Counted from the first letter of the stretch, positions 38,401 through 41,400 are shown. The stretch: DNA of 64,000 nucleotides from Podarcis muralis (GCF_964188315.1 NC_135656.1:44144001-44208000), one strand, 5' to 3'. Numbers and translations: made by a program. Notes: generated by a model not told the origin, from the sequence alone.

Positions 38401-41400
38401 TGACTTCTCTAACTTACTTGTAAAGTAAGCTTTATTAACATTAGCCTAAATTTTGGAAAACAAATGGTGAGCCTAATCTCAAGTACCTCTGAATTCAAGT
38501 TCTTGGCTGGGGCTGAGAAATCCCAGGGTCCCAGAAGCTATGAACTGGCCTAAAGCAGTCATTACACATTGAACGCAGGACTCTCTCACCCACCTGCATG
38601 CACTGGAACAGGAGAGTCATGATATTGCTCCGGGCCACAAGCTGCTCCACGTGACATCCCAGACCTTCAGCCAATCCACTCAGCAAGTCAAGAGCAACGA
38701 TCATGAAATCTTTATCAGGAGCCTCGTATTGGTCTGGGTGTTGACTATACATCTACGAATTTGAGAACAGAGAACCATTTACCTCAAAGAAAACACAAAG
38801 CCTCAACAAGGCCATAGCAAGCTTCACTGAGCAACAGTTTGAACAGGAACACTTGTGCTGTTAAAGCACAGGGTAAGTTTCAGTTGCCTAGTCGATGGTT
38901 AATGCTAGCTTTCGTTACTGCCAGTTATGGTTAATCTGCCCACATGTGATCCTCCTTCTCTGATCAACAGGGACTCAGTTTTCCAACACTTAAGTATTAT
39001 ATACAGCATACTTTTTTAAAAAAAACCAAAACCAAGAAACAACAGCCTATCCTACCATGGCTTGGGCAAGGGTCTTCTGCACAAGTGTCACACAGCGCTG
39101 GTAGACAGGTTCACAGTATGGAAGGAAGCCACTTTGGAGTGCAGTTGCTACAGATGACAAACACTGTAGAAATAACAGATAGCAACTCAAAAGACATGCA
39201 TGGAGGACCACCTGGCATGCACATTGTCTTGCCCTTATTATCACTGAAACCATTTAACACAAAACCACTTAGCTCAGTCATGAAAGGGACAAGAAACAAC
39301 TCGCCCCTTTCATGTGTTTATTTCAAGCAGCTAGAATTGTGCATTAAGGACAAGGAGCCTGCCCGGGAACCAAAATGTCTATATTTCTCAACATGCAACA
39401 GTACATTTTTTTGCTGATTTCCAATACACTATATTAAATACATTTCTTGCTAGACAGAGTGGGTGGGGAAACCATTGCCTTTGAGTAGCATGGCCATTAT
39501 GCACAACAGAGCTTAGTTCTTTCAACTGAAGCATTAGAGCCCACCAAAGTTAATGGCTGGTCACTTACTTCTAAGAGAGGGAAAAGATCTTTGTCCTCAT
39601 CCTTTAGCTCATTCCACTTCTGTATCAGCGGTGGCATCAGTTTTTGGATATATTCCTGGGTAAGAGAAGATCAGTTATGACCAGTTATGATCATGCTGCA
39701 GTCCCAGCCACTGCCAGTATCATAAAGTGAGCCCAGAATCCTTCAGAACTGAAAAATACTCAACATGTAACTTCAGGATTCGAATGTCTTGTATTTTCAT
39801 TGGTCATCACTGTTTCTGGGCTCAGTGTGCAGATACTGTCAGACCAAGACTACTACTATAATTCCATAGAACCAGACTTCTAAGTGTTTCCCAACCACTC
39901 TGACCAGGGTATTATCTCAGAGAAAAATAATTTTGTCTGGAGAAGCAGACATAACTAGCAGCATTTATACCAAATAAGAAAAAGTAGAAACAGCATCAGT
40001 AGGAAAAACAACATGCTTGACAAGTAAGACTATTAAGTATGTGTGCTTGACGTTTCTTTGCCTTTTAAGAATAATTATTTGTGCAGAAGCAGCACAAGAC
40101 TACTATTTTACCTCACTGGCATTTGCAGACTTACAGTTGCATAATAGCAAAGGAACTCATAACCACTTCTACCTGCATGACACTAAAGTAACTTTTTGTA
40201 GTGCCACAGCATAATAGAAATCAGTGCTGCACCTTATTTTAAGTTAAGGCTCACACCACAACACTACTTTATTCTGTAGTCAATAATACAAAGTAGAAAA
40301 AATGGGAAATCTGTCTCGTAACAGTTCCACCAAGTAGCAGTTCTCCCTAATCATATATGGAACTACGATGCTGCCTTGTATGAAGTCAGACCACTGGGTT
40401 CACCTAACCAAATACTGTCTGCTCTTCCCAAGACCCCGGAGAGCTACCAACTTTGTTTTAATTGGCCTCGCCACCAGAGATCCTTTAATTTGAGATTTCC
40501 AAGATTGAGTGTGGGATTGTCTGCATAGAAAGAATGCTCTTCTGCTGAGTGGTATTCCTGACTTTCCTCCAAGGGGCAAAAGGCAGCCTATATGGCTCCT
40601 CCCTCTCCATTTTATTTTCACAAAAACTCTCAAAGAGTGGCCAGGTTCATCCAGTGAGATTTGTGGCTGAGTGAGGATATGAACCCTAGTCCCTCACTTT
40701 ATCAGCTACAGCACACTGTCCTTTCATTATGCTCTTCCTGTCAGTAGTAATTTTAATTTATAAAATGACCCAATTTATATACTGATTGATTGTAAAAACA
40801 AACAAACTTTAAATATAAAGTAGCATACACACAGCCTCAATAACAGTGAAATAACAATTTCTGGGCTTCCCTTCTCTAGACCTTTCACCTGCAATATCTT
40901 AGCACCAAGGAAACAGGTTTGACAGTCAATTAGATTCTTATACTATCTCTTGGAATAGGAGACCTTTTTTGCTTCAGGTCTCTGAATGTACCACCAATCA
41001 AGGTTTATCAAGGAGGGGGATTAATGTGGTGTACATGTAGTTAAACTACAGTGGGTTTTGTTCATCACACTAATGAAGGAAAAACATTCACGTATTTGGA
41101 CGGCCCTGCATTCAATAATTAGTTTATGCTGACAGTATTTCACCCCAATGAGAAGAGGTAAGAGGACACAACCAGCCATGGTGATTAAATGCTAGCAGTT
41201 TCCACTGTTAATGCCAAAAAGAAGAATGCACATACCGGCTGGTTGAGGTGGTGCCCAACAGAATCAGCCAAGGTGCCAATCGCATCATACAGGATCAGAA
41301 GGTTCTTGTGCTGGTATTTCCCAAATGCAAAAACCAAAGTATCCAGAATGAAGCTGAGGTATGGGACCAGCTCTGTGCAGGCCTCTTCTTCAAGGGTGGC

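Follow-up and report, generated by a model that had tools for sequence, protein, structure and literature searches.

Several small nucleolar RNAs (snoRNAs) are known from the neighborhood of 18S ribosomal RNA (rRNA) position 346 or from the transportin-2 gene, TNPO2. In zebrafish, RiboMeth-seq revealed 2'-O-methylation of small-subunit (SSU) C346 in human numbering, a site that is not known from human or mouse and that is among those at which methylation rises during development (PMC7668251). Its guide, SNORD200, is one of five novel box C/D snoRNAs (SNORDs) without a match in Rfam, and among the five, BLAST relatives were reported for SNORD201 alone (PMC7668251). At position 350 of 18S rRNA, all non-mammals tested, including whiptail lizard and chicken, carry a U that is pseudouridylated by SNORA35, while mammals carry a C (PMC6984369). 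The only 18S methylation site of Xenopus laevis that is not shared with human is Um252 (PMC8797249), from which it follows that this frog lacks Cm346. Finally, human TNPO2 hosts SNORD41B, which the snoSeeker list gives as a U41 isoform for 28S-Um4276 (PMC1636440). Here we describe a candidate snoRNA in the lizard Podarcis muralis, located on the minus strand at 39728-39824 of a 64,000-nucleotide (nt) stretch of DNA (GCF_964188315.1 NC_135656.1:44144001-44208000; hereafter, the window), within an intron of TNPO2. Our results make it probable that the candidate is a functional, intron-encoded box C/D snoRNA, predicted to guide 18S-Cm346, and that it represents the sauropsids in an old TNPO2-hosted family of vertebrates.

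The candidate has the full architecture of a box C/D guide. An earlier note on this DNA had proposed C, D', C', and D boxes together with an 11-base-pair (bp) perfect terminal stem at this location, and we found all of them on the minus strand, with the extent of the unit given by its sequence, its predicted fold, and a family model, R1, that is described below. The 5' arm of the stem, UGAGCCCAGAA (39824-39814), pairs perfectly over 11 bp with the 3' arm, UUCUGGGCUCA (39738-39728), which joins the C and D boxes and leaves D' and C' in the interior. The C box, GUGAUGA (39804-39810), conforms to the RUGAUGA consensus of box C/D guides and contains a TGATGA core that is unchanged in all eight aligned copies of the family, and the D box, CUGA (39743-39746), is part of a TCTGA that is unchanged in all aligned copies as well. 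Between them lie the D' box, CUGA (39773-39776), which has the same sequence in the other lizard and in fish, and a degenerate C' box, UGUUGA (39760-39765), which reads TGTTGA or TGTGGA in the aligned copies. The D' and C' boxes are 7 nt apart, and four nt separate the D box from the 3' arm of the stem. The 27-nt spacer between the C and D' boxes ends in a 12-nt antisense element, AGACAUUCGAAU (39778-39789), plus one C (C39777). When a 105-nt stretch containing the candidate was folded, its energy was -29.3 kcal/mol, compared with -19.5 +/- 3 for shuffled sequences (z = -3.26), and 0 of 200 shuffles folded as well.

A second spacer of 13 nt, GUAUUUUUCAGUU (39747-39759), precedes the D box and is a possible second guide. 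It is kept in lizards only and is entirely different from the corresponding spacers of the bird and fish copies. Here, UUUUCAGUU is common to both lizards that we compared (window 39747-39759; approximately 20672-20684 in Phrynocephalus record L002) and is not found in birds or fish. Its complement, AACUGAAAA, could represent a lizard-specific second target.

The position of the candidate within its host gene is also that of an intron-encoded snoRNA. Coding exons of TNPO2 extend over 29463-56536 on the minus strand of the window, as judged from tblastn searches with the public Phrynocephalus protein (P0279); this map, which is not a joined gene model, comprises 22 exon matches spanning residues 1-888, with 16 of the 22 at 91-100% identity. 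The host intron, about 1.58 kilobases long, runs from 41235 to 39656. Upstream of it is an exon (41236-41409, minus strand) that matches residues 500-557 of P0279 at 100% identity, and downstream is an exon of 29 codons (39569-39655, minus strand) that was placed by sequence and tblastn. With the AG of the 3' splice site at 39657-39656, the end of the candidate's stem is 72 nt from the exon, close to the 75 nt given earlier, and in orthologous copies the distance to the 3' splice site is approximately 65-90 nt. An intronic location some 65-90 nt before the 3' splice site suits splicing-dependent processing, and a distance like that of the candidate was reportedly described by Hirose and Steitz in 2001 as typical of spliced-out box C/D snoRNAs.

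The antisense element associated with D' points to a single nucleotide in 18S rRNA. Its reverse complement is AUUCGAAUGUCU, and pairing is perfect over 12-13 nt, up to AUUCGAAUGUCU(G), with 12 nt matched in lizards, in a record labelled as sturgeon, in carp, and in Astyanax, and 13 nt matched in birds. Box C/D guides are recognized by at least 10 nt of antisense sequence immediately 5' of D or D', and the nucleotide that they target faces the fifth position before the box (the +5 rule). The candidate has 12 nt, and its fifth nucleotide upstream of D', G39781, pairs with the C of AUUCGAA. Scanning by pattern for the surrounding 18S sequence, with Y allowed at the variable base, we obtained four metagenome stretches; three were read (L007, L009, and L010), and one from human gut (L008) was excluded. 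The three contigs, two of which (L007 and L009) were confirmed as SSU_rRNA_eukarya, all contain ATTCGAATGTCTG, all have T at the variable position (...CATTCGAATGTCTGCCCTATCAACTTTCGATGG), and all offer a 12-nt match to the guide at ATTCGAATGTCT. The claimed complementarity of 12 nt was perfect in each of them. The accompanying guess that lizard 18S rRNA would carry U at the variable position also proved right, given that position 350 is U in whiptail lizard (PMC6984369). Position 350 is the eighth base of the target 12-mer and lies four nt 3' of the selected C, which is thus 350 - 4 = 346 in human numbering. Together, the +5 rule, the invariant guide, and the known Cm346 of zebrafish (PMC7668251) uphold the earlier assignment of the target to the C of AUUCGAA, at about human 18S C346. 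In the Rfam structure line, an unpaired UUC separates two short helical segments of a 5'-domain helix, and the final base of that UUC is the selected C.

These features suggest how the candidate would operate. After splicing, the snoRNA would be released from the intron of the TNPO2 precursor messenger RNA and trimmed as far as its terminal stem and K-turn. As a stable small RNA, it would then be bound by the core box C/D proteins: fibrillarin, which is the methyltransferase, together with NOP56, NOP58, and 15.5K. The antisense element linked to D' would pair with 5'-AUUCGAAUGUCU-3' of 18S rRNA, so that the fifth nucleotide upstream of D' faces the C of AUUC|GAA, which is equivalent to human C346 and would be 2'-O-methylated. 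That the candidate is expressed in P. muralis and that C346 is methylated in sauropsids are both points that we infer.

The candidate belongs to a family whose members share the same host gene. Using one TNPO2 exon (window:42064-42285:-) as a query, we reached public transportin proteins and fetched their gene loci. The corresponding TNPO2 intron contains a copy in three further sauropsids: an agamid lizard, Phrynocephalus (L002, 20613-20699); a neognath bird (L001, 3333-3417); and a tinamou, Crypturellus (L005, 5944-6024). In all three, as in Podarcis, the intron lies between exons that end in GHHLNQP and start with EYIQKLMPP. Across the four sauropsid copies, the C box core, a 14-nt AGACATTCGAATCC, and TCTGA are unchanged, while the D-side spacer and the sequences of the stem arms vary. 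Nevertheless, each copy still makes its own terminal stem of 6-11 bp: GCCCAGAA / TTCTGGGC in lizards, AGGACC / GGTCCT in the neognath bird, where it can be extended with one mismatch, and GCGGATCC / GGATCCGC in the tinamou. Stems were checked copy by copy, as the stem register in the MAFFT alignment shifts by one column between lizards and birds.

From the four sauropsid copies we built R1, a sequence-only model, and ran searches with filters off. The model scores its training copies at 71-80 bits, with the candidate at 79.7 bits (39732-39821). Outside sauropsids, it matched a record labelled Acipenser sinensis (L011, 11519-11589; 31.8 bits, E = 5e-9), a carp TNPO2-like gene (L013, 10504-10566; 29.3 bits, E = 2e-8), and Astyanax (L014, 22402-22464; 21.5 bits, E = 6e-6). 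The fish copies sit in TNPO2 introns other than the sauropsid one: the sturgeon-type copy is upstream of the MQGMVPFL exon, and the teleost-type copies of carp and Astyanax are in the intron directly after the NRPNTPKTL exon. A core, AGACAUUCGAA, is unchanged in all of the lizard, bird, sturgeon-labelled, carp, and Astyanax copies, and the seven intact copies all share the guide core AGACATTCGAA. Given these independent matches in fish TNPO2 genes, conservation across lizards, birds, and fish is, by sequence comparison, far beyond chance, and by the same standard the candidate is a real, deeply conserved box C/D snoRNA. In the frog TNPO2 loci (X. laevis L and Eleutherodactylus) and the mammalian ones (elephant and sloth), the R1 search returned no copy.

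A further reading is that the candidate is a chance box-like motif or a dead intronic relic with no function, and one fish copy, that of Arapaima, does show signs of decay. There, R1 found only a weak match (L006, 9464-9505; 10.7 bits), which has an intact C box, a guide of AGACAUUUAAAUC with TA in place of CG, and no D' box; the rest of the Arapaima TNPO2 locus contained no further copy by R1 search. As this match is in the same teleost-type intron as the copies of carp and Astyanax, we read it as a probable decayed relic. In lizards, birds, the sturgeon-labelled record, and two teleosts, however, the boxes, the guide, and a pairable stem have been kept while the surrounding intron cannot be aligned. 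The fold of the candidate, with the z score given above, and independent fish matches with E values of 5e-9 to 6e-6 also speak against a relic, and so we strongly disfavor that explanation as scarcely credible for the candidate itself.

Two of the records used here contain repeats. In L011, which is flagged UNVERIFIED_CONTAM for possible contamination and has repeated exons, the snoRNA copy recurs identically at 13568-13638, and the exon MQGM[VM]PFL is present three times (14968, 17181, and 19263). These repeats reflect either an assembly artifact or a real tandem duplication. In the Crypturellus contig L005, the intron's 3' end is repeated in tandem together with the first part of the EYIQ exon at approximately 6160-6245, which is probably an assembly artifact.

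A real, conserved box C/D snoRNA could leave C346 unmethylated in sauropsids and act as a folding chaperone for 18S helix 7, serve another target, or be an orphan. The guide duplex covers U350, the site of pseudouridylation by SNORA35 in non-mammals (PMC6984369), so that the candidate and SNORA35 would compete for the same stretch of 18S rRNA. The two birds have a non-consensus D' box, CCGA instead of CUGA, and our reading of the literature turned up no 2'-O-methylation map for any lizard or bird. Both of these points count against a C346 guide in sauropsids, and three others weaken the wider argument: complementarity to the target was read in metagenome 18S contigs and not in Podarcis 18S rRNA; the absence of copies in frogs and mammals applies to TNPO2 loci, not to whole genomes; and the zebrafish member of the TNPO2-hosted family, although it is most likely SNORD200, was identified from the shared target site and the carp copy and not from zebrafish sequence. 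The catalogues of chicken snoRNAs (PMC2653536, PMC2770669) list no TNPO2 host and no guide for an 18S C near the equivalent of C346, which would be about C307 in chicken, given the offset of 39 between chicken U389 and human U428.

The Astyanax copy (L014, 22402-22464) lacks one C between the guide and D' (GAAU-CUGA). With this deletion, the +5 rule points to the neighboring G (347) and not to C346, which speaks for the reading without methylation of C346; judging from the copy's sequence, it may be a natural one-nucleotide shift of the methylation site. Yet the spacing between guide and D' is exactly kept in six of the seven intact copies, and zebrafish C346 is methylated with a dedicated guide (PMC7668251). 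Furthermore, the distribution of the guide matches that of Cm346 across zebrafish, Xenopus, and human and mouse: cyprinids have both (the guide in carp and Cm346 in zebrafish), and the frog and mammals have neither. For these reasons, we consider a snoRNA that does not methylate C346 to be unlikely. Since sauropsids have the guide, Cm346 is predicted in sauropsid 18S rRNA, and the pattern suggests that lizards and birds retain a modification of C346 that mammals and frogs have lost.

The candidate might alternatively be a diverged paralog of SNORD41, or an ortholog of the mammalian snoRNA variously called ZL2, SNORD41B, or "SNORD135," that was retargeted in sauropsids. The gene offers opportunities for such a history. 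Several SNORD41 copies occur in TNPO2, in introns that differ among vertebrates, and the intron that holds the candidate in sauropsids holds a SNORD41 copy in X. laevis, Eleutherodactylus, and the sturgeon-labelled record. The Xenopus copy also resembles the candidate weakly in its central part, GAAU..UGAAGUUA (3.6 bits, E = 2.9). Rfam provides no support for this relationship. At gathering thresholds, SNORD41 was the only family found in the whole window, with no family for the candidate, which does not reach the 41-bit gathering score of RF00588. At E <= 10, the candidate matched neither SNORD41 nor sno_ZL2, and obtained only generic box C/D matches (SNORD96, 16.1 bits; ceN65, 15 bits; SNORD78, 14.5 bits). 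Likewise, sno_ZL2 (RF02724) had no match in the window at its gathering score, which leaves the candidate outside that family. In place of the SNORD41 guide GUAUUCGUACUG, the candidate has its D-side spacer, which differs from that guide and is not conserved.

Mammalian and fish genes further separate the two families. In elephant TNPO2, Rfam found SNORD41 and sno_ZL2 (83.5 bits; L004, 10530-10604), the latter with a SNORD41-type guide, GUAUUCGUACUGU, before its D box and located in a different intron, before the AEFMPILG exon. This other snoRNA of mammalian TNPO2, sno_ZL2 (snoSeeker's SNORD41B), is thus a paralog of SNORD41 and not the ortholog of the candidate. The orthology that the earlier note had entertained with a second snoRNA of human TNPO2, "SNORD135," is consequently not supported when examined through sno_ZL2 and SNORD41B, as the mammalian RNA has another guide and another intron. 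Moreover, fish TNPO2 holds the candidate's family and SNORD41 side by side, which places the separation of the two before tetrapods. We therefore consider retargeting of a SNORD41 relative to be very improbable. An origin of the candidate from a SNORD41 copy within sauropsids was ruled out by the fish copies with the identical 18S guide.

In one scenario for the history of the candidate's family, bony vertebrates inherited 18S-Cm346 and the TNPO2-hosted guide from their common ancestor, with independent losses in frogs and in mammals and with the mammalian loss occurring alongside the change U350C; we regard this scenario as evenly balanced between true and false. U350C would introduce an A-C mismatch into the central part of the guide duplex, and it also orphaned SNORA35. 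If the scenario is true, two neighboring modifications in one rRNA helix were lost in a coupled manner. Covariation between guide and target, which had been suggested from the single mismatch to human 18S rRNA, did not survive comparison: the guide was never altered to match the mammalian C350, and the copy is absent from elephant and sloth TNPO2.

Besides the candidate, TNPO2 in the window contains other snoRNA sequences. SNORD41 (RF00588, 48.3 bits) is at 41601-41671 on the minus strand, in the intron just upstream of that of the candidate, with the guide AUAUUCGUACUGU before its D box. A SNORD41-like copy that falls under the Rfam gathering score is at 43755-43841 (minus strand) in a TNPO2 intron farther upstream; its D-side guide is GUAUUCGUCCUGU, in which C replaces A at the fifth position upstream of D. 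Across vertebrates, we observed one to four SNORD41 copies per TNPO2 gene in varied introns. They are at 19871-19942 in L003; 2086-2155, 9319-9390, and 9649-9718 in L012; 25452-25522, 34230-34300, and 39707-39777 in L011; 8968-9035, 10013-10086, 11938-12003, and 14470-14536 in Astyanax (L014); 3204-3273 in Arapaima (L006); and 5349-5417 in carp (L013). Rfam uses two models for ZL2, snoSeeker's SNORD41B, and SNORD41, which look like a single family. Overall, snoRNAs seem to move or duplicate between the introns of TNPO2.

Our findings have implications for the study of rRNA modification in vertebrates. SNORD200, which was published without relatives, probably gains them through copies, each hosted by TNPO2, in lizards and birds, in the sturgeon-labelled record, and in other teleosts. 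The analysis predicts a 2'-O-methylation in sauropsid 18S rRNA that has not been mapped, and it recasts a "fish-specific" modification of the ribosome as an ancestral vertebrate one that mammals and frogs would have lost. Because presence of the guide tracks the modification, the family provides a natural experiment on the joint evolution of snoRNA repertoires and rRNA modification patterns, one that also spans the movement of snoRNAs among introns of a single host gene. For annotation, it supplies a family that has no Rfam model. To a snoRNA specialist, we expect this to be a modest and not a major surprise.

Four known systems are closest to the candidate. SNORD41 is likewise an intronic box C/D snoRNA of TNPO2, located one intron upstream of the candidate in the window, but it uses a D-box guide, GUAUUCGUACUG, against 28S rRNA, whereas the candidate uses a D' guide against 18S rRNA. 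The mammalian sno_ZL2 is also a TNPO2-hosted box C/D snoRNA, yet it occupies another intron, carries a SNORD41-type guide, and has no match in the window. SNORA35 acts on the same stretch of 18S rRNA, 4 nt from C346, and its 18S target has disappeared in mammals, which have C at position 350. It differs from the candidate in class (H/ACA), chemistry, and locus, and it has been kept as an orphan in mammals, while the candidate is absent from the mammalian TNPO2 genes that we examined. The most likely zebrafish relative is SNORD200, a box C/D guide assigned to SSU-Cm346, the exact nucleotide that the +5 rule, applied to the conserved guide, predicts for the candidate. Neither has an Rfam family, and just as the zebrafish site is missing in human and mouse, the candidate is missing from TNPO2 of elephant and sloth. 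The sauropsid copies differ in residing in a TNPO2 intron other than that of the teleost copies, but the cyprinid representative, in the TNPO2-like gene of carp, carries the same guide as the candidate.

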